The position numbers and the translations under genes are program-made. The notes beneath the pieces were generated by a model. It did no database searches. It had not been told where the DNA came from and saw only the letters and a program-made list of their open reading frames with translations. A DNA stretch of 64,000 nucleotides from the sequence record KX397371.1; one strand, given 5' to 3'. Below, piece after piece: positions 487 through 61,538 of the stretch (position 1 is its first letter; the number at the start of each line of letters is the position of its first letter).

Positions 487-825
487 ATGTCTTCTCACGA
501 TAAACCGCTGATGCTGATTTACAATATCCAGTACACGCTGGATGAAATCGCCAACGCGTTGGGTAACACCCGGATTCCCAATATCCCGATTCTGAAGGAA
601 GTTGTTAGCAACGTTCAGATTCACCAATGGGATGGGACTAACCACTGTACCGTAGCCGTCGTTACCACCCGCGGTCATGTCTGCACGATGGATACATGGC
701 AAGAACCTAACGCAGAAAACCTGCACCGTGTTCTGAACGGTGCGTTGGAACACGCGTTGAAGAATGCAGCTCGGGCGTGGCTCGGTTCGCAAATCAACGG
801 TCTGTCCGACAACGTAGCGTTCTAA
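487..825 (+). CDS. hypothetical protein
   Basis: 112-aa ORF with GGAG SD directly after the upstream gene. Confidence 0.75.
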   Translation: MSSHDKPLMLIYNIQYTLDEIANALGNTRIPNIPILKEVVSNVQIHQWDGTNHCTVAVVTTRGHVCTMDTWQEPNAENLHRVLNGALEHALKNAARAWLGSQINGLSDNVAF

Positions 826-833
826 AAAAGTCT

Positions 834-858
834 AATTACAAGAATACCTTGTGATATG
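834..858 (+). promoter_or_regulatory. phage middle/late-type promoter (AATTAC-N15-TATG)
   Basis: AATTAC 834-839 and TATG 855-858; same spacing at 3745, 4119 and 60457; resembles phiKZ nvRNAP promoter elements; lies upstream of tRNA-Trp. Confidence 0.65.
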
Positions 859-882
859 CTGAGAAGCACGTAAATGAATTTT

Positions 883-958
883 GGGGGTATAGTTCAATTG
901 GCAGAATGTCGGTCTCCAAAACCGAAGGTTCGAGGTTCGAGACCTCGTGCCCCCGCCA
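883..958 (+). tRNA. trnW: tRNA-Trp(CCA)
   Basis: Cloverleaf: acceptor GGGGGTA/TGCCCCC, anticodon arm TCGGT-CTCCAAA-ACCGA, TTCGAGA T-loop, encoded CCA. Confidence 0.95.
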
Positions 959-960
959 AA

Positions 961-1046
961 TTCCAATCGCTCGATGACCCGGTCTGTCCATCTGGCCCGA
1001 GCAGTTCAACACCGCATAGCCGAAAGGCGTGAGTGATGGATTGGAA
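961..1046 (+). ncRNA. candidate small structured RNA after tRNA-Trp
   Basis: TTCCAATC (961-968) pairs with GATTGGAA (1039-1046); internal GCC-GAAA-GGC GNRA hairpin. Confidence 0.35.
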
Positions 1047-1054
1047 GAAACGTA

Positions 1055-1207
1055 GTGGCAAAGCAAAAAATTAATATCGTGGAAGGTCGTGATGGCGTGA
1101 AGTACGCCGAACGTAACGGTGTGGTGTGTCGATTAGACATGCCTACCCCTAAAGCGAAGAAAGAATTTAGCCAGCAGGAATGTGAGAAACCGCGGAAGAC
1201 CAAATAG
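1055..1207 (+). CDS. small basic protein (50 aa, GTG start; below ORF-track cutoff)
   Basis: Manually translated MAKQKINIVEGRDGVKYAERNGVVCRLDMPTPKAKKEFSQQECEKPRKTK*; GGAAG upstream; stop 19 nt before next gene. Confidence 0.55.
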   Translation: MAKQKINIVEGRDGVKYAERNGVVCRLDMPTPKAKKEFSQQECEKPRKTK

Positions 1208-1226
1208 TCAATCGCTGGAGAATCTC

Positions 1227-1448
1227 ATGAACCTGTATTTGCTAGAACGTCAAGACGATGTCGGTTACGACGAGTTTGATTCCATAGTCGTTGCAGCTCC
1301 TTCGGAGAATGTAGCGCGCGCAATTCGTCCAAGGGGAGGATGGGTACCTGATGTGGCATGGGATGATGTGGAAACACTGACCTGCGTAAACATCGGGGTG
1401 ACTCACCTTCCGACCGGTATCGTACATACCTCGTTCAACGCAGGCTGA
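1227..1448 (+). CDS. hypothetical phage protein (73 aa)
   Basis: GGAG SD before ATG 1227 inside ORF-track 1182..1448. Confidence 0.75.
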   Translation: MNLYLLERQDDVGYDEFDSIVVAAPSENVARAIRPRGGWVPDVAWDDVETLTCVNIGVTHLPTGIVHTSFNAG

Positions 1449-1451
1449 ATA

Positions 1452-1469
1452 GGTGGGCTTCGGCCCACC
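1452..1469 (+). terminator. GC hairpin with UUCG loop (terminator or processing hairpin)
   Basis: GGTGGGC-TTCG-GCCCACC; weak U-tract. Confidence 0.5.
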
Positions 1470-1611
1470 AAACCTTCTGTCTCGCCCGACAGATATACTT
1501 TACAAAAAACCCGTAGAGCCTTTCGGGGGTGAAGCTAGTTGGAGTGGTTGTTCACTCTACGGTCTTCTACTCCTGGGCGCTGGCTCACCCACCTAAAGGA
1601 TAAAAAGAATT

Positions 1612-2037
1612 ATGTTCGGTCTTTTCAAAAAACGCGCTAACCGTGCTATGTCTGAAATCAAAAAATTCGACAAACGTGACCTGGCTGAAGCCGTGGTTAA
1701 CGCCGCTTACCTGATTGCGTACGCGGATGGCGAGCTGGAATCTTCTGAGAAATCGAAAATCGATCAGGTGCTGCGTGCCAACCCGGTACTGTCTAACTTC
1801 CAGTCCGAGCTGAACACAATTGCTTCTACAATCATCGCTCAGCTGGAAGCGGACATCGACATCGGTCGTCGTGCTGCCCTGCGCCAGATTGCTGATGTGA
1901 AAGGCGACCAGCGCGAGTGTGAAGACGTGCTGGATGTGGCAACTGCCATCGCCCGTGCTGATGGCGAAATCGAACCGGCAGAAGTTGAAATGCTGAAACA
2001 GATCGCCGAAGCGCTGGGTCTGCGTTACGACGCGTAA
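1612..2037 (+). CDS. terB: TerB-family (tellurite-resistance-like) protein
   Basis: Duplicated AYADGELESSEK / ARADGEIEPAE motifs characteristic of TerB; 141 aa. Confidence 0.85.
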   Translation: MFGLFKKRANRAMSEIKKFDKRDLAEAVVNAAYLIAYADGELESSEKSKIDQVLRANPVLSNFQSELNTIASTIIAQLEADIDIGRRAALRQIADVKGDQRECEDVLDVATAIARADGEIEPAEVEMLKQIAEALGLRYDA

Positions 2038-2040
2038 GCC

Positions 2041-2223
2041 ATGAAGCTGAAAACCAAGTTATACATCGGAGCCGCGTTGCTACTGATGCTGCTTGGCAAC
2101 TTCGTTGGGCGAGCCTTTACGTTAATCGCCTACGTAGCTGTAATCGGCGTAGTAGCCTATCTGGCCTGGCCTGTCATCAAGAAGTTTGCGGCGAAGTCGC
2201 AGGCGAAGGTGAAAGGCAAGTAG
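2041..2223 (+). CDS. small membrane protein (1-2 TM helices)
   Basis: 60 aa, two hydrophobic stretches and a basic C-tail; 3 nt after terB. Confidence 0.75.
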   Translation: MKLKTKLYIGAALLLMLLGNFVGRAFTLIAYVAVIGVVAYLAWPVIKKFAAKSQAKVKGK

Positions 2224-2289
2224 TAATTCGGTGCGGGGGTCGTTCCCTCCGCACCACCCTTTTATTCTCATCTAAAAATAGGTATAACC

Positions 2290-3129
2290 ATGAGAAAGGT
2301 GCTTTTCGGAATACTTGCAGCGTTGACGTTTAGCATGTCCGCAGTCGCGGCAGACGAAGTAGTGATTACCACAGGACAACAGGGCCTGACCTATAACTCG
2401 GTCTATGGCGTTAATCTGGCCGGTGCCATCAGCGAGTTCGGTACTCGTGCACGGGTCATCCCGTCGAAGGGGTCGTTAGACAACCTCGACAAAGTTGCCG
2501 CCGGTGAAGCCCAGATTGGTTTCACGCAGGCAGATGCTTTCCAGTTCTGGCGCGCTAAGCACCCGAACGAAGCGCAGAACGTTGACATCGTCGGTCAGCT
2601 GGCCCGTGAATGTGTCTGGGTCGCTGTCAAGAAAGATGGCAAAGTTAAAGATGCGAAAGATTTAACCGATGGCGTGAAAATCGCAGTCGGTGAACCGGAC
2701 TCTGGCTCCTACGCCAGTTGGCAATATCTGCAACAGTTGGTGAAAGAGTATTCCAAAGCGGAAACTTACGCCAAGGGCGGCATCCGTTCGTTGTCCAAAG
2801 TGGCAACGGGTGAATACGACGCATTCCTGTGGGTATCTGCGCCGGATAAAAGCAACAAATTCCTCGAAGCGGTCAATCAAGACAGTTCTGGTTTAGAGCT
2901 GATTGACATGAGCACATGGAACGTCAACGACAAACTGCCTAACGGCCAGTCTGTGTACACGAAAGAAACGGCCAAGACAGACAAGACCGCGTTCTTCGGT
3001 AAGAAAGTTGATGTTCCGTGCACCACCACACTCGTCGTGGCCAACACTGACGCTGGTGATGATCTGCTCGAAACCGTTTCTACCATCCTCCTGAAAAACA
3101 ATTCACGAGTGATGGGGGACAAAAAATAA
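2290..3129 (+). CDS. TAXI-family TRAP solute-binding protein
   Basis: N-terminal signal peptide (…MSAVAA/DEV); ITTGQQGLTY, SKGSLDNLDKV, IGFTQAD and AVGEPDSGS motifs fit the TAXI fold. Confidence 0.8.
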   Translation: MRKVLFGILAALTFSMSAVAADEVVITTGQQGLTYNSVYGVNLAGAISEFGTRARVIPSKGSLDNLDKVAAGEAQIGFTQADAFQFWRAKHPNEAQNVDIVGQLARECVWVAVKKDGKVKDAKDLTDGVKIAVGEPDSGSYASWQYLQQLVKEYSKAETYAKGGIRSLSKVATGEYDAFLWVSAPDKSNKFLEAVNQDSSGLELIDMSTWNVNDKLPNGQSVYTKETAKTDKTAFFGKKVDVPCTTTLVVANTDAGDDLLETVSTILLKNNSRVMGDKK

Positions 3130-3135
3130 AAATAT

Positions 3136-3735
3136 GTACTGACCCAGTGCATCTTTTCGGGCTGGGTAGGGTTAATGTCCCTACCTGCGCGGTGTTCGTT
3201 AAGGCTGGTAACGTTCGCTAAGACCTATCGCATACCCGTAAGCCGATAGCAGCCGGTTACACAAAGAACTATCCATGTGGTAGGTAACCGACCGTTCACG
3301 ATCTCATTAGGTGAGCAAATAATCTATGCAAGGACTTCTAGGATTTGTGCTCGACATGATGGGCAGCTTACGCCGCCTCATCAAGCAGTTACGAATCTGG
3401 AAGCTTGCCCATTACTGGTTTACAGGCGAAAAGGCATCTCGTGAGAGTGTGCCATGCAAACTGCGTATTTACATTAGTATGTTCACTGCGGTGAGCATAG
3501 GTCAAGCCCCGGAACGATAAGCCGGTCAGCTACGCCTGTAAAATACAATCTGAAAATCATAATGGGATTAAGTTCCCAGATTTGAAAAGGCGACTGTGTG
3601 TCGTCGGCGATAACCCCCCGTCGTGGACTCGGTTATCCCAAAGGTAATGTGAAAGGGGTTGGTGCTTGGAGACGCTAAGACCGGCGGATACGCTGGCTCA
3701 GAAGAAGAAGTCCATCAACCCCGTTCTCACCTGAG
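3136..3735 (+). ncRNA. candidate large ornate non-coding RNA (~600 nt)
   Basis: Region without a credible CDS, starting at a TATG; more than 10 stems including long-range 3419-3428/3533-3542, 3655-3663/3714-3722 and 3307-3312/3729-3734, plus loop pseudoknot GGACTTC/GAAGTCC. Confidence 0.7.
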
Positions 3736-3744
3736 TAACACCCT

Positions 3745-3767
3745 TTACAAGGCGTTACTTATATATG
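3745..3767 (+). promoter_or_regulatory. middle/late-type promoter (TTAC-N15-TATG)
   Basis: TTAC 3745-3748 and TATG 3764-3767; same spacing as the other copies. Confidence 0.55.
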
Positions 3768-3789
3768 CGAAAGCGAGGTGAACATGGGA

Positions 3790-4110
3790 ATGTATCGTGA
3801 AGGCCCTGAAAGCACGGTGAGTCACCGTAGTCATGATTACTCTGTGGATGCATTGCTGGATATAGCGGAACGCCATAGCCTCGTTCAAATTCCAGTGTCT
3901 AGAATAGAATGGATTTTAAACGAGACTACGCTCGATGACGAGCGGGTTAAGAATGCAGATACGGATTATCCAATAATCGTGCTGCACGAAGGAAGTTTGT
4001 ATATTGTATTAGACGGTGCCCATCGCCTTGCGAAGGCGGTAGCCGAAGGCAAAGACACCATCGCAGCCAAGATATTGGTGCCTGCGAATTTACCGAAACC
4101 GGTACGATAA
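3790..4110 (+). CDS. ParB/sulfiredoxin N-terminal-domain protein
   Basis: YPIIV...VLDGAHRLAKA matches the ParB/Srx DGxHR motif; GAGGTG SD 9 nt before ATG 3790. Confidence 0.7.
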   Translation: MYREGPESTVSHRSHDYSVDALLDIAERHSLVQIPVSRIEWILNETTLDDERVKNADTDYPIIVLHEGSLYIVLDGAHRLAKAVAEGKDTIAAKILVPANLPKPVR

Positions 4111-14182: not shown

Positions 14183-14214
14183 CTCCTCGCTTCGGCGGGG
14201 AGGTTATTTTTTTT
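14183..14214 (+). terminator. Rho-independent terminator
   Basis: CTCCTCGC-TTCG-GCGGGGAG followed by a T8 run. Confidence 0.85.
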
Positions 14215-36595: not shown

Positions 36596-38302
36596 ATGCA
36601 GCAGATTAACATCACGCACACCACCATGGGGGTGCGAATTGAAGTTCCTATCCGACCCGTTGAGATTGCTATCAAGACATGGGCGGAACGGAATCTGCAC
36701 GCCCCGAAAATGGGAAAAGAGCGCGGCAAGATTACCGTGGAACAAGGAGATGGCTACTACGCCCACATGGAAGGCGCACGTAGCTTTATCTTTCACAAAG
36801 CCCACCTTGAGGAAATACTCTCCATTATCAAGAACGCTATCATTGAATACCGTCTTGAGGTGGAGGTTAAGCACCACAAGGTCGAGCGGGCGGAGCCTTA
36901 CCGTTGCACATTTGAAAACTTCGGTACGCCGATGGTAGTGGACGATCCTGAATCACGCTTCTATTACCAGAACGATGTGGTAGAGAAAGCGCTTGATCCG
37001 AACCGTCTCCAGACCATCTTTGCCATCGATACTGGCCGTGGGAAAACGAAGTCGTTGCAAAAGGTGATGGTGCGTAAGCAAGTGCGTACTGCCCTCATCA
37101 TGCGTCCGACGTACGTGGACAAATGGCTGTTCGATATCTGCGAAGACCCGACTGGGTTGCAGATTGACAAAGACAAAGTTCTGGTCTGTCGTGGCGTCCA
37201 AGGGATTATTGAAGCCTACGAGATGGGTATCAGTGGGGAGTTAGACCGTCGGGATATCCGGGCGATTATCTTCCCAACCGTTTCGCTGCAATTGTTCCTG
37301 AAAGAGTACATCAACACCGGCCACTCAATGGGGATTGACATTGAGCGGTTCTACGATGTGATGGGTGTGGGTCTGATCGGAATGGATGAGGTGCATGAGC
37401 ATTTCTATTTGGTGTATCTGGCTGGGATTATCCTGAACCCATGTGCATCGATTGAAATGTCAGCCACCTTAGAACCGGGTGCCGCGAAGACGTTTATCAT
37501 CGCGCGCTATCTGGAACGTTTCCCAGTCGACTTACGGCTGTCCGTTGAACGTATTAAGGTTGTTGATATCCGCGCGTTCTACTACACGCTGGATGATAAG
37601 AAGTTGGCGTGGTGGGCGACAAAGATGTCCCCGTACAACCACAAGTTGTTTGAAGGTAAGTTGATTCGCGAAGGCTTCCACGTTTCGTATTGTGAGATGT
37701 GGTGGAATCTGATCGAGAAGGTGTATCTGTCCAATTACCAACCGGGACAGAAAATCATCATCTTGTTCTCAACCGTTGACATGTGTGAGTTCTTTACCCA
37801 GTTCCTGCATCAGAAGCTGGCGGGGAACGAACAGTTCAGCGAGTTGATGGTGGCGAAGTATAACGGTGGCGATTCGTATGATGACTTCATCATGGCGGAG
37901 TTTGGTGTCTCTACGCCGAACAAAGCCGGTACCGCGATAGACAAACCGGGTATGGTCCACATGATTGTGACAGTGCCAGTTGATGACCAACAGCTGAACT
38001 TACAGATTGCCGGACGTCCACGTCCTGTGCGTGAGGTGTTCGGTTGGGACATGAACCCAATTGTGTGGTTCGGGCATTGCATGAACATTGCTAAACACGG
38101 TACGTACCTGAACTCACGTATGCGTTCGCTGCGCGACACGGTATTGTCATTCAAGGTTGCGACTTCCCCTTATGTTGTAAGGAAAACGTATGATAACGCC
38201 CCCACTTCCAGCCGCCCCAACAGCCCCTTACGCCGGATTGACGTTGGCAGACTTTCTCGTAAAGGTTCTAAGGGCCTATCCCGGCGCAGAAAGCGCCGCT
38301 AA
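36596..38302 (+). CDS. SF2 DExH helicase
   Basis: Walker A DTGRGKT, DEVH, MSAT and QIAGRPR motifs. Confidence 0.92.
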   Translation: MQQINITHTTMGVRIEVPIRPVEIAIKTWAERNLHAPKMGKERGKITVEQGDGYYAHMEGARSFIFHKAHLEEILSIIKNAIIEYRLEVEVKHHKVERAEPYRCTFENFGTPMVVDDPESRFYYQNDVVEKALDPNRLQTIFAIDTGRGKTKSLQKVMVRKQVRTALIMRPTYVDKWLFDICEDPTGLQIDKDKVLVCRGVQGIIEAYEMGISGELDRRDIRAIIFPTVSLQLFLKEYINTGHSMGIDIERFYDVMGVGLIGMDEVHEHFYLVYLAGIILNPCASIEMSATLEPGAAKTFIIARYLERFPVDLRLSVERIKVVDIRAFYYTLDDKKLAWWATKMSPYNHKLFEGKLIREGFHVSYCEMWWNLIEKVYLSNYQPGQKIIILFSTVDMCEFFTQFLHQKLAGNEQFSELMVAKYNGGDSYDDFIMAEFGVSTPNKAGTAIDKPGMVHMIVTVPVDDQQLNLQIAGRPRPVREVFGWDMNPIVWFGHCMNIAKHGTYLNSRMRSLRDTVLSFKVATSPYVVRKTYDNAPTSSRPNSPLRRIDVGRLSRKGSKGLSRRRKRR

Positions 38303-38381
38303 GGCATTGTGTCAGGACCCGGTGATTAACCGGGCCTTTCACTATTACACGATTACGGAACACTTCACATCCTGCTTTATC

Positions 38382-38570
38382 ATGCAGCGTGGGTTAACGT
38401 ATTTCGTCACTCGTACGTCCAGTATTCGTGGTACTGCGGCGTACGAACTTTATTCTTACGAACTGTGGAACAACAATCCCGCAGGGAATACCGATGAAAA
38501 CCCGAAGGTGGCCTACCGCCTCTTCTCGGACAAATGGCATGATTGGGTGACTGTACCACATAACGGTTAA
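38382..38570 (+). CDS. possible small protein (62 aa)
   Basis: 3' part of ORF-track 38190..38570; fills the intergenic gap; weak SD. Confidence 0.4.
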   Translation: MQRGLTYFVTRTSSIRGTAAYELYSYELWNNNPAGNTDENPKVAYRLFSDKWHDWVTVPHNG

Positions 38571-38624: not shown

Positions 38625-39236
38625 ATGTCTCGTCGTAAAAAGCAGCCTGGTTTTAGCCCGCGTGAAGCAGCACGCGAACGTGTCCGTAGCATCATGCGTG
38701 GCATGAACACGACTGAGAATGTTTTCCTCGGTCATTCGAAAACGCACGCCGAGAAAATCGACCGTGAGTTTGAACGTATCAACTCGCTGATGGGCGAAGA
38801 CCTGAAAGCGTATTTGACGGAGTGGTTAAAGCACTCACAGGCTGCCTTCTTGGGTGCCATGCACGACTTCAAAACGCGCCTGTTTGCGGTGCGTACTGAT
38901 GCCGATGCAAAGGCAACCAAACTGATGGCGGTCATCGACGGCCACAAGTGGGACGAAATCAAAGATGTCGTGATTGTGGCTGAGCTGGAACTGGCGGACT
39001 TTGACATTCAGGTGGACAACGTGGCACAGGAAACCCTGCTGTCTATCGTTGAAGCCGGTGCGGCGTATGAACAGCGTCGTGAATGTGTCCGCGTGGGCCT
39101 GAACAACAACTGGACCCATGAAGCAATCCTGACCAAGCTGCGCGAGCTGGATGCCCAAGCTGCCGCCGAAGCACTGGCAGCGGCAGAAGCAACAGCTGAA
39201 TCTGTAGTAGAGCAAGAGGAACCTGCGAATGTCTAA
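38625..39236 (+). CDS. hypothetical helical protein
   Basis: AAGGA SD before ATG 38625; AATTAC-N15-TGTG promoter-like site at 38569-38593. Confidence 0.8.
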   Translation: MSRRKKQPGFSPREAARERVRSIMRGMNTTENVFLGHSKTHAEKIDREFERINSLMGEDLKAYLTEWLKHSQAAFLGAMHDFKTRLFAVRTDADAKATKLMAVIDGHKWDEIKDVVIVAELELADFDIQVDNVAQETLLSIVEAGAAYEQRRECVRVGLNNNWTHEAILTKLRELDAQAAAEALAAAEATAESVVEQEEPANV

Positions 39237-41253
39237 CGATCCGCGTCCGTCGTTCGGTGCTGCCGAACCGGAAACGGCTGAGGTGCGACTTCCTCCGCGT
39301 GACACCCTTGTGGGTAAGTCCGCGGAAGAGGTGGCCTTCGAGCTGGTAAAACTCAATCCCACTTTTTCTTTTGCCGAAGCAACTGAACGCGCGAAAAGTC
39401 TGGTGATGTTAAATGCCCCGGTAGAAGATACCCCACCCCCTGTGGTGGATGTACTCGATCAACCGATGATTCGTGAAGCGTCACCAGAAAACCTGGCGGC
39501 CCTGCAAAGCACTGAGAACCAACTGGAGCAGCCGGTCAAACTTGACCTGTCTCAGTCACAATCTCAGCCTGAACCAGCGCCTGCGGTGCAACCGCGTGCG
39601 GAACCCATCGCAAGCATTCCTGCTGCAAGTGCGGAGAATTTCCCTAAGCCTCAGCATGTTCCGGTTAAAGCGGAAGTGATTCCTGCCCCAGCGCTCGATG
39701 CCGAAGATACTCCGGCTGACCGCGATGAGCAGACGCCGAACCTCTCAAAAGAGAAACGTCGTCAGATTGATTTCGGGCCAGAACCGCACCGTGCTGAAAT
39801 TGCCAGCATGGACCCGGAAGACCCACATCGTGTGCTGACTCAAAGTGATGAGCTGGTCGGTACTACATTGCCGCTGGCAGGTGAGCAGGAAGTCATGCAG
39901 TTCTTCGCCAGCATCCCACGTAATCGTGAAGGGCGTCCGATGTTCCGTTCAGCCGCCGAAGAGGAGCGTTATCAGAAGCTCTTTACGGCGCTGGAACTGA
40001 CCCCGCCTATCATGATTAACAACCGCGCTGCGTTTGACATGGCGTTGGAGCGTGAAGATACGTCGTGGCAACAGACCATCCAACTGTCGAACGGTAAGTA
40101 TGTCTCTGCGGTCACCGACCGTGGTGCAAATGCCCAAGGTGCGATGGCTGCCCTGCGTCGTCGTCGTGGTTCCGGTTCTCCGGTCTCAGTGTGGTTGCCT
40201 GCAACCGGTATCTTTGTCGGTTTCCGTGCCCCGCATGAAAACGACATGTGTGACTTCGACATTCGTATCACGTCAGAACAGTCGAAAATCGGGATGTTCA
40301 CTTACGGTCTGCTGTTGGCCTCGTCTTCGGGCGTGTATCTCCAGCACATGATCGAACACTCGCTGAACTTTGCGGTGGACACCACGTACGACTGTCAGGG
40401 TCTGGACATTAAGACCGCCCTGATGGACATCGTGGATGTGGACGACTACTGGCTGCTGGTCATTGGCCCATTGATGGCGAAGTTCCCAGCGGGTATTCCG
40501 TGGAAGCTGCTGTGCCCTAACCACGAATGTGGTCATGAGCGTGAAGTGCGTCTGAATCTGGCCCGCTGTATCCGTATGGCAGATGGCCTGTTCTCTGACC
40601 TACACCGTTCGCTCTGGCTGCGCCAGCGTGGTAAAGGCCCGGATGCAATTATCGGCAACGCCGAGTATCTGGAATACCGCAAAGAGCTGCCGAAGTCCAA
40701 AGCCGCCCGTTTCCATTACGAGCAGCTGGGTATCACGGTAGAGTTCGGTCGTTCGACCATCGGTCAGTTCATTGACAACACCAATGCGTGGGTAGAGAAG
40801 ATTAACAGCTCTGCCACCAACGCACTGGCGAACCATGCAACTGAAACCGAGCGCTCGCAATACATCCGTCTGGCTGCTGAGAACCGCCGCCTGACCCGTT
40901 ATGCGACGCACGTTAAAGCCATCATCGTTGAAGAGACGGTGAAAGGTGAACCGGTTGAGACCCGCGAAGAAGATCCAGACCGTATTTTCGAAATGTTAGA
41001 AGAACTCTCTTCTGACCGCATGTACGTGCTGGCATTTGAAAACGCGCTGTCCACTTACAACGAAGAATCGCGCATGGCCGTGTTTGGTTACATGGGTCAC
41101 GCGTGTCCGAGCTGTAAGACCGGAGAGGGTGAAGAAGACGGTCCGTTCCGTGGTATTGTTACCATTAGCCCGGACAAGGTTTTTTTCGCGCTATCTCGTG
41201 TGGTGTTCGAGATACAGAGAGTCTACTTACAACAATTCGAAAATATTGGATAG
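39229..41253 (+). CDS. conserved protein with Zn-ribbon pairs (phiKZ gp77-like; possible tail/baseplate assembly chaperone)
   Basis: CPNHEC and CPSC; Pro/Ala/Glu-rich N-terminus; slippery site near the 3' end. Confidence 0.75.
   Translation: MSNDPRPSFGAAEPETAEVRLPPRDTLVGKSAEEVAFELVKLNPTFSFAEATERAKSLVMLNAPVEDTPPPVVDVLDQPMIREASPENLAALQSTENQLEQPVKLDLSQSQSQPEPAPAVQPRAEPIASIPAASAENFPKPQHVPVKAEVIPAPALDAEDTPADRDEQTPNLSKEKRRQIDFGPEPHRAEIASMDPEDPHRVLTQSDELVGTTLPLAGEQEVMQFFASIPRNREGRPMFRSAAEEERYQKLFTALELTPPIMINNRAAFDMALEREDTSWQQTIQLSNGKYVSAVTDRGANAQGAMAALRRRRGSGSPVSVWLPATGIFVGFRAPHENDMCDFDIRITSEQSKIGMFTYGLLLASSSGVYLQHMIEHSLNFAVDTTYDCQGLDIKTALMDIVDVDDYWLLVIGPLMAKFPAGIPWKLLCPNHECGHEREVRLNLARCIRMADGLFSDLHRSLWLRQRGKGPDAIIGNAEYLEYRKELPKSKAARFHYEQLGITVEFGRSTIGQFIDNTNAWVEKINSSATNALANHATETERSQYIRLAAENRRLTRYATHVKAIIVEETVKGEPVETREEDPDRIFEMLEELSSDRMYVLAFENALSTYNEESRMAVFGYMGHACPSCKTGEGEEDGPFRGIVTISPDKVFFALSRVVFEIQRVYLQQFENIG
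41181..41214 (+). promoter_or_regulatory. putative -1 programmed ribosomal frameshift signal
   Basis: In-frame T TTT TTC heptamer (41181-41187), 4-nt spacer, 7-bp hairpin TATCTCG/CGAGATA; the -1 frame is open from 41169 into ORF 41292..41660. Confidence 0.75.
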
Positions 41254-41291
41254 ACGCCGACGACGTTCCAGCCGAAGCTATTATCACTGCC

Positions 41292-41660
41292 ATGAAGCTG
41301 GACACCACCTCGCTGTTCAAACGGCGAGACAGTCGACCTATCACGTATCAAGAAGCGCATGACGAGCTACTCTCCACGTACGACGGGATACTCGGGTTAG
41401 AGACCGGTGAGAACAACATCAGTGTCTCTGACTTCGAGAACCCTATCAACCAGAGCTTGTATGAAATCTGGGCGACCACGTACGTGCGTGAAGGTATCAA
41501 GGAGCTGTTTGGTTACGACCTTGATACCTGGCTTGATAGGCCGCGTTGGAAGTTGATGAAGCATCTGGAAATCGCAAAACGTCGTCGCGCAGAGCTAGAC
41601 AATGCTAAGAAAGGCGCAATCCCGCCAGAACTTGAGAAAGAACTGAAAGGGCGCATCTAA
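41292..41660 (+). CDS. conserved small protein, probably the C-terminal extension of a frameshift fusion
   Basis: No SD before ATG 41292; frame open upstream to the slippery site. Confidence 0.75.
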   Translation: MKLDTTSLFKRRDSRPITYQEAHDELLSTYDGILGLETGENNISVSDFENPINQSLYEIWATTYVREGIKELFGYDLDTWLDRPRWKLMKHLEIAKRRRAELDNAKKGAIPPELEKELKGRI

Positions 41661-41688
41661 GGGAGCTTCGGCTCCCTTATATTTTTTT
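41661..41688 (+). terminator. Rho-independent terminator
   Basis: GGGAGC-TTCG-GCTCCC followed by a T run; identical hairpin at 61510. Confidence 0.85.
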
Positions 41689-41719
41689 GTTGTTATGAGA
41701 CCCATTTTAGGAAACCGTC

Positions 41720-59680: not shown

Positions 59681-59716
59681 CCCTACTCCTTCGGGAGTAG
59701 GGTTTTCTTTTTTTTA
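59681..59716 (+). terminator. Rho-independent terminator
   Basis: CCCTACTCC-TTCG-GGAGTAGGG followed by a T run. Confidence 0.9.
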
Positions 59717-61509: not shown

Positions 61510-61538
61510 GGGGAGCTTCGGCTCCCTGTTTTTTTTTT
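61510..61538 (+). terminator. Rho-independent terminator
   Basis: GGGAGC-TTCG-GCTCCC followed by a long T run. Confidence 0.9.

Follow-up and report, generated by a model that had tools for sequence, protein, structure and literature searches.

Probable programmed −1 ribosomal frameshifting in cg18, a core gene of the nucleus-forming jumbo phages

In this study, we investigated two adjacent open reading frames (ORFs), gp57 and gp58 of Erwinia phage vB_EamM_Parshik, within a 64,000-nucleotide stretch of DNA (the window), whose region of interest is 100% identical to KX397371.1 at the same coordinates. The record labels both products, of 674 and 122 amino acids (aa) respectively, as hypothetical proteins. 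We consider that gp57 and gp58 are probably one gene, the core gene cg18 of the nucleus-forming jumbo phages, and that programmed −1 ribosomal frameshifting would yield two proteins from it. What was observed directly in the compared sequences comprises the slip site, the −1 relation between the two frames, the frame that stays open across the site, conservation of coding sequence in either frame, the absence of any conserved start codon for the downstream ORF and the codon choice that preserves the U-run.

At the site, the zero frame of the gp57 ORF reads AAG GTT TTT TTC GCG, which places T_TTT_TTC in the X_XXY_YYZ phase at 22 codons ahead of the zero-frame stop, that is, close to the ORF's 3' end. 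The −1 frame has a TAG at 41166-41168 and is then open up to the stop at 41658-41660, running through the annotated ATG of gp58 at 41292. Counting 653 zero-frame and 157 −1-frame codons, the shifted product would comprise 810 aa, and the unshifted product 674 aa. An earlier reading of the window, made from the sequence alone, had described the in-frame heptamer, the −1 frame open into gp58, products of 674 and about 810 aa, and a gp58 ATG lacking a Shine-Dalgarno (SD) sequence, and all of these were borne out by direct reading and codon arithmetic; no match of at least 4 nucleotides (nt) to AGGAGG was found between −16 and −4 of ATG 41292. Moreover, no promoter-like or terminator-like site was found between the two ORFs, and they form one transcription unit with a terminator right after the −1 stop.

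Conservation of the frame relation and of the slip site

Runs of seven T occur 23 times in the window, against 12.9 ± 5.2 expected, so that the run alone is unremarkable and its significance rests on conservation. The 33 loci examined represent 11 named genera together with unclassified phages and metagenomic contigs. The close and middle relatives were represented by the orthologous region of 18 phages of Machinavirus, Seoulvirus (including SPN3US, where the pair is gp39/gp40), Erskinevirus, Wellingtonvirus and Derbicusvirus, and the further loci came from PhiPA3, Goslar, RSL2, Ea35-70, SL2, PCH45, phiKZ, 201phi2-1, a Vibrio phage, three IMG/VR contigs and three Logan contigs. All 33 loci place the downstream ORF in the −1 frame, and this frame extends without a stop back over the U-run on the homologous Phe-Phe pair; the frame relation holds despite insertions and deletions in the linker. 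The in-phase heptamer is T_TTT_TTY in 29 of the 33 loci and G_TTT_TTT in three others; among the close and middle relatives, all 18 carry TTTTTTC in phase with a −1 frame that is open from before the heptamer. The proposal of the sequence-only reading that a −1 shift fuses the gp57 ORF to the ORF behind it is thus strongly supported, and over a wider range than had been claimed, with an in-phase slippery heptamer and the open −1 frame conserved in the SPN3US, Erwinia and phiKZ orthologues where it had suggested looking.

The run itself is less constant than its position in the codons. Phe653 is invariant and Phe652 nearly so in a 13-sequence alignment, and the length of the run varies from 6 to 8 T among the relatives (5 in the Vibrio phage); the feature that stays constant while run length varies is an in-phase U_UUY on the same codon. 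All 13 lineages tested have TTT as the first Phe codon, even though in most of these genes TTT makes up the smaller share of Phe codons (fraction 0.10-0.50); RSL2, for example, has only two TTT among its 20 Phe codons, and both are at the slip site. The wobble base before the Phe codons is T in 12 of the 13 lineages, across Val, Leu, Thr and Gly codons. Taken as products of background fractions, the joint probability comes to about 10^-6.6 in the case of the first Phe codon and to 10^-7.4 in that of the wobble T before it, values that assume independent lineages and are not strict, as the lineages are statistically non-independent. Judged from this codon choice, which runs counter to the genes' own usage, it is apparently selection at the nucleotide level that keeps the U-run.

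Coding conservation in both frames was also observed around the site. Where the residue is the same, the fraction of identical codons is 0.78-0.81 in the overlap versus 0.55 in the gene body, and in the 15 codons ahead of the slip site synonymous conservation reaches 0.72 versus 0.55. In 13 non-redundant genomes exactly 72 nt separate the heptamer from the zero-frame stop, and both the sequence and the length of the 21-residue zero-frame tail that follows the site are conserved across the SPN3US-like group. Broken down by codon position, variation amounts to 0.12/0.11/0.30 in the upstream zero frame and to 0.18/0.14/0.42 in the −1 frame beyond the zero-frame stop; this third-position bias indicates that the supposedly intergenic 38 nt evolve as −1-frame coding sequence.

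The downstream ORF and its annotated start

The annotated starts of the small ORF (ATG, GTG, TTG or other) are found at different places, giving lengths of 45-154 aa across the family and 74-136 aa among the 18 close and middle relatives, in contrast to the 153-175 aa obtained in 14 lineages when the −1 product is counted from the slip site. In this respect the earlier suggestion that the downstream gene is usually mis-started agrees well with the comparison. A Leu codon stands in place of the Parshik ATG 41292 in Caitlin, ChrisDB, SNUABM9 and SNUABM4; no start codon is conserved throughout the family, and an SD sequence is absent before the small ORF in nearly all lineages. The −1-frame peptide between the heptamer and the annotated starts is conserved among relatives, and the −1 product is homologous throughout the family. 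In phiKZ the −1 frame is open for 91 codons ahead of the annotated start of PHIKZ076.4 (80 aa), and in SL2 for 126 codons ahead of the 45-aa annotation.

These data bear on the possibility that gp57 and gp58 are two independent genes, in which case the small ORF would use its own start or rely on termination-reinitiation, and the −1 overlap would be incidental. All public records except that of phage SEGD1 annotate the locus in this manner, Parshik has the ATG at 41292, the best 150 representatives among the homologues of the −1 product are all short ORFs, and the phiKZ transcript values and the GAGGAG of the Vibrio phage, both taken up below, point the same way. We nevertheless regard it as improbable, because neither a start codon nor, in nearly all lineages, an SD sequence is kept, conservation of protein and codon phase reaches upstream of every annotated start back to the U-run, the −1 relation survives the linker insertions and deletions, and the U-run is kept by codon choice.

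The distribution of fused and split forms was further enquired into with a profile of the −1 product, which found 566 homologues in 1.84 billion representative proteins. The best 150 of these were 71-168 aa long, bar one noisy 312-aa fragment, with no long in-frame fusion among them, which argues that the split state is maintained; together with the conserved zero-frame tail of fixed length, this argues that the short form is needed too. Two candidate natural fusions were rejected: P0046 (the 312-aa fragment), a noisy short contig that changes frame elsewhere, and P0049, a scrambled product. SEGD1 (KU726251.1, positions 614-3001 of locus L019), which belongs to the same species as SPN3US, is the sole record among those examined with one continuous ORF, of 795 aa, and it differs from SPN3US over 2.39 kb by 21 substitutions and a single 1-nt length difference. 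Its single ORF is probably a homopolymer miscall. Read the other way, this record would make every split locus a single ORF broken by a homopolymer miscall or by mutation in a decaying gene, an explanation to which we give almost no credence, since over 30 genomes and contigs from 11 genera, sequenced independently of one another, have the split state in common, the zero-frame tail past the site is conserved at a fixed length, in-frame fusions are missing from the best 150 representatives, and SEGD1 is the outlier and itself more likely the miscall.

Proposed ribosomal frameshifting versus transcriptional slippage

We infer that the shift is ribosomal, that it has a certain efficiency, and that both isoforms would be needed in a fixed ratio. 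According to the proposed mechanism, most ribosomes would read through U_UUU_UUC and terminate 22 codons on, giving the 674-aa form, and a fraction would slip back by one base with two tRNA-Phe on UUU-UUC, which could both re-pair perfectly on UUU-UUU. After the slip, these ribosomes would translate another 157 codons in the −1 frame to produce the 810-aa form, whose helical C-terminal domain currently appears in annotations as a small gene of its own. The H_HH.U_UU.Y class of motifs, including U_UUU_UUC and U_UUU_UUU, is among the most efficient −1 motifs in E. coli according to Sharma et al., and U_UUY tetramers alone are shift-prone (PMC4066793).

Stimulatory elements were searched for around the site. 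The earlier reading had described a perfect 7-bp hairpin 4 nt after the heptamer, and the stem TATCTCG (41192-41198) / CGAGATA (41208-41214) is indeed there in Parshik, at −7.1 kcal/mol and with a 4-nt spacer; its role as a stimulator is not convincing. The 60 nt after the Parshik site fold no better than shuffled sequences (z = +0.9). In the 13 genomes compared, five of the seven pairs are kept in eight, the stem is broken in Kwan and no compensatory changes were detected, and distant lineages hold no counterpart, so the conservation in orthologues that was proposed as a check on the hairpin did not materialize. A search of Rfam gave sub-threshold noise only. On the 5' side, the invariant CCGGACA block and the raised synonymous conservation around it could represent an upstream stimulator as yet unrecognised. 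A pairing of CCGGACA with a downstream GTCCG, seen by eye only, encloses the slip site and shows no covariation, and it was dropped.

An alternative source of the same long product is transcriptional slippage, in which an RNA polymerase, either that of the host or the non-virion multisubunit enzyme of the phage, adds one U on the T-run and the altered message is translated normally. The conservation of a homopolymer of 6-8 T as a run would suit this explanation, as would the selection for wobble T ahead of the Phe codons, which lengthens the run, and the failure to find a stimulatory RNA structure downstream; besides, E. coli genes avoid UUUUUUU in all three frames, an avoidance that has been ascribed partly to slippage (PMC4066793). 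On the other hand, the variation in run length, down to 5 in the Vibrio phage, should shift slippage rates steeply, and the in-phase U_UUY nonetheless stays constant. The SPN3US-like group, moreover, holds exactly seven T followed by C, the canonical heptamer, with no drift to longer runs. Six or seven T is also short for slippage by bacterial RNA polymerase. Slippage by the polymerase therefore seems rather unlikely to us, and the ribosome is favoured because U_UUY is constant in phase on the same codon through runs of varying length.

It is important to note that a number of observations weigh against ribosomal frameshifting at this locus. The homopolymer run is equally a signal for transcriptional slippage. 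Across the 18 phages no downstream RNA structure was found that is unusually stable or common (fold z from −1.8 to +1.5), nor was any SD-like element found at the usual distance upstream of the slip site. The non-independence of the lineages in the codon statistics belongs here too, as does the fact that Parshik (at 41292) and some relatives have an ATG. The Vibrio phage pVp-JHP1101 (positions 3381-3875 of locus L020) has only T5 at the homologous place and a GAGGAG ahead of the small ORF's own ATG; a different in-phase heptamer, A_AAT_TTG, occurs 30 nt further on, inside the open −1 frame, and in this phage the slip site may have moved or the recoding may have been lost. No protein-level evidence for a frameshift, or mention of one, was found in the literature searched. 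Again, in an RNA-seq table of phiKZ (NC_004629.1, locus L036, 2474-2716) PHIKZ076.4 scores 1.5-6 times as high as PHIKZ077, the two sets of values co-varying, in units that are not known (PMC12571901 supplement 7), and the highly expressed convergent gene PHIKZ076.3 ends about 50 nt away. The higher values could nonetheless reflect a separate, additional or more stable 3' RNA, so that the C-terminal domain would in part be expressed independently; the frameshift model would accommodate a free C-terminal fragment in some phages. In one phiKZ dataset the counts for PHIKZ077 are only 0-2 (PMC12571901 supplement 4).

Family, function and genomic setting

The gp57 protein is a member of the Chimalliviridae core gene cg18 / phiKZ gp077 family. 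Homologues were detected by tblastn in 172 phage records across the phiKZ-like phages, and all 13 family members tested matched phrog_8054 and phrog_4585, both families of unknown function. Scans of IMG/VR with single proteins yielded near-identical relatives only, or no match, and word-indexed protein searches yielded close relatives only. A note in the PhiPA3 record equates its gp57 homologue with phiKZ gp077, 201phi2-1 gp136 and EL gp47, and the core-genome table of Prichard et al. lists cg18 as Goslar gp081, PhiKZ gp077 and RAY gp267, a 'hypothetical protein' (PMC10299810 supplement). Synteny is kept with the homologues of gp078 and gp079 and with a virion RNA polymerase subunit gene. In one metagenomic phiKZ-like contig (locus L033, 4241-6465), the neighbour at the position of the helicase homologue is an 860-aa protein with weak Hint and LAGLIDADG matches, which may carry an intein.

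With regard to function, no functional family was found for gp57 or the −1 product in Pfam, NCBIfam, PHROGs or PDB sequences, searched with the single proteins and with profiles of both frames. The AlphaFold2 model of the zero-frame product has a predicted local distance difference test (pLDDT) score of 59 overall, with a core at residues 300-630 scoring 55-90 and about 190 disordered N-terminal residues. A fold search with this model against the PDB gave no match (E ≥ 1.9). Against BFVD, Foldseek returned, after family members, an entry named 'Baseplate hub assembly protein, bacteriophage T4-like' (E = 1.5e-5, template-modelling score 0.42 by target, from a query of pLDDT 59) and an unnamed entry at E = 1.4e-5. 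Homologues are labelled 'baseplate' or 'T4 gp26 like' in two phage records and one metagenomic entry. In contrast, at the level of sequence profiles no T4-baseplate family was matched in Pfam, PHROG or NCBIfam by the 13 family members, even at permissive thresholds, so that of the comparison with T4 gp26/gp51 proposed in the sequence-only reading, one weak fold-level match remains. The model of the −1 product is helical and poor (pLDDT 59) and matches family members only. The Goslar virion model comprises 28 proteins, none of which is the cg18 protein, and the 201phi2-1 record gives the cg18 homologue no mass-spectrometry note, unlike the neighbour gp138. As a weak guess from these models and records, the cg18 product may be a non-virion assembly factor with a T4-like baseplate-hub-assembly fold.

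The −1 frameshift of lambda-type tail chaperones is conserved across many phages and is routinely mis-annotated as two genes (PMC5009743). Lambda gpG/gpGT and P2 E/E+E' follow the same −1-frameshift logic as is proposed for gp57/gp58, and the sequence-only reading had identified gp57/gp58 as the jumbo-phage version of this chaperone pair, that is, as its equivalent by descent. A −1 shift near the 3' end that yields a C-terminally extended form, the fact that the Goslar virion model and the 201phi2-1 record notes do not report the proteins as virion components, and the fold-level match to a T4-like baseplate hub assembly protein would accord with such a descent. We find it very doubtful all the same, and the identification did not survive the comparison of position, size and homology. 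Lambda gpG/gpGT lies between the tube and tape-measure genes; gp57/gp58 does not, being flanked by genes for RNA polymerase subunits, a helicase and a DNA polymerase, and SPN3US has its tape measure as gp239 and its tube as gp255, as against gp39/gp40 at the gp57/gp58 locus (PMC5694885, PMC5105663). The upstream product is 4-5 times too large (500-720 aa in the cg18 family, about 140 aa in lambda gpG), the heptamer is G_GGA_AAG in lambda and a U-run in cg18, and the two show no sequence or fold similarity, the best Foldseek match to a 'tail assembly chaperone' being at E = 2.2.

Other known systems resemble gp57/gp58 in part. The T4 gp26-type hub assembly protein may resemble gp57 at the fold level, by a model of medium quality only and with no sequence-profile match, and gp57 is not in a baseplate cluster; we know of no frameshift in T4 gene 26. 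In E. coli dnaX, −1 frameshifting gives tau and gamma, two isoforms with a common N-terminal body and differing C-termini in a fixed ratio. The dnaX shift, however, shortens the protein, whereas that of gp57/gp58 would lengthen it, and dnaX relies on an upstream SD and a strong downstream hairpin, neither of which is evident at gp57/gp58. The IS3-family insertion sequences (IS) use −1 frameshifting on X_XXY_YYZ in orfA/orfAB, as proposed for gp57/gp58, and U_UU.U_UU.C is among the heptamers used by IS elements (PMC4066793). IS sites usually come with a downstream hairpin or pseudoknot, unlike cg18 with no conserved structure, and IS3 orfA/orfAB is a transposase, whereas cg18 is a phage core gene.

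A broader view is possible, though we hold it only tentatively: the recoding could be an ancient, family-wide feature of a core gene of all nucleus-forming jumbo phages, setting the isoform ratio of a non-virion assembly factor. Such a system might be a functional counterpart of G/GT built on an unrelated T4-hub-assembly-like protein, and it might work without an RNA stimulator or be made by the phage's own RNA polymerase.

No slippage is annotated in any record examined, SEGD1 being given as one continuous ORF, and our full-text literature search found no description of a cg18 frameshift. The portion consulted of a large recoding review makes no mention of phiKZ or jumbo phages (PMC5009743). 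The mechanism is of a known kind; its occurrence in a core gene of the nucleus-forming phages appears to be new. About 70 core genes define the family of nucleus-forming phages, and cg18/gp077, a gene of no known function, is one of them. If the frameshift is true, public annotations other than that of SEGD1 are wrong at the cg18 locus, including those of phiKZ, SPN3US, Goslar, 201phi2-1 and PhiPA3, and the small "gene" has been mis-started or reduced (45 aa in SL2, 80 aa in phiKZ) and left out of core-genome lists and structure predictions. The true products of the locus would change the reading of knock-down, proteomic and interaction data. Besides the classic examples of tail chaperones and transposases, there would be one more deeply conserved frameshift, and the cg18 site would offer a natural test of a U-run alone setting a frameshift ratio.

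The features of the locus are collected in Table 1. The two genes for RNA polymerase among its neighbours encode beta subunits. The gene gp56, a homologue of phiKZ gp078, overlaps gp57 by 8 nt (39229-39236), suggesting translational coupling; its SPN3US homologue, gp38, gave only 4 spectra in virions (PMC5694885).

Table 1. Positions of the cg18 features in the window
Feature	Position	Strand	Remarks
Two-frame gene, Parshik gp57 + gp58	39229..41660	+	Chimalliviridae core gene cg18, phiKZ gp077 family; homologues across phiKZ-like phages
Zero-frame ORF gp57, short product of 674 aa	39229..41253	+	Pro-rich disordered N-terminal third; conserved core with two Cys pairs
CCGGACA block immediately 5' of the slip site	41169..41175	+	Invariant (13 genomes); synonymous conservation raised
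Slippery heptamer T_TTT_TTC (U_UUU_UUC)	41181..41187	+	Within T7 run 41180-41186; on zero-frame Phe652-Phe653
Dual-coding overlap zone	41187..41253	+	Protein conservation in both frames
−1-frame coding part, 157 codons (C-terminal extension of the predicted 810-aa product)	41187..41660	+	Frame open from 41169
7-bp hairpin with 9-nt loop, 4 nt past the heptamer	41192..41214	+	Present, weak, not conserved
Annotated gp58, 122 aa (3' part of the −1 frame)	41292..41660	+	ATG without SD, not conserved
Intrinsic-terminator-like hairpin and T-run	41658..41689	+	Includes and directly follows the −1-frame stop; ends the transcription unit

Further upstream, gp55 (38190-38570) shares 113 nt, read in a different frame, with the 3' end of the helicase gene, whose last position is 38302, and the annotated start of gp55 differs in every close relative, with ORFs of 189-381 nt, suggesting that gp55 may be mis-started or spurious. 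Elsewhere in the window, longer T-runs of 8-10 T are found at 14207-14214, 59708-59715 and 61529-61538.

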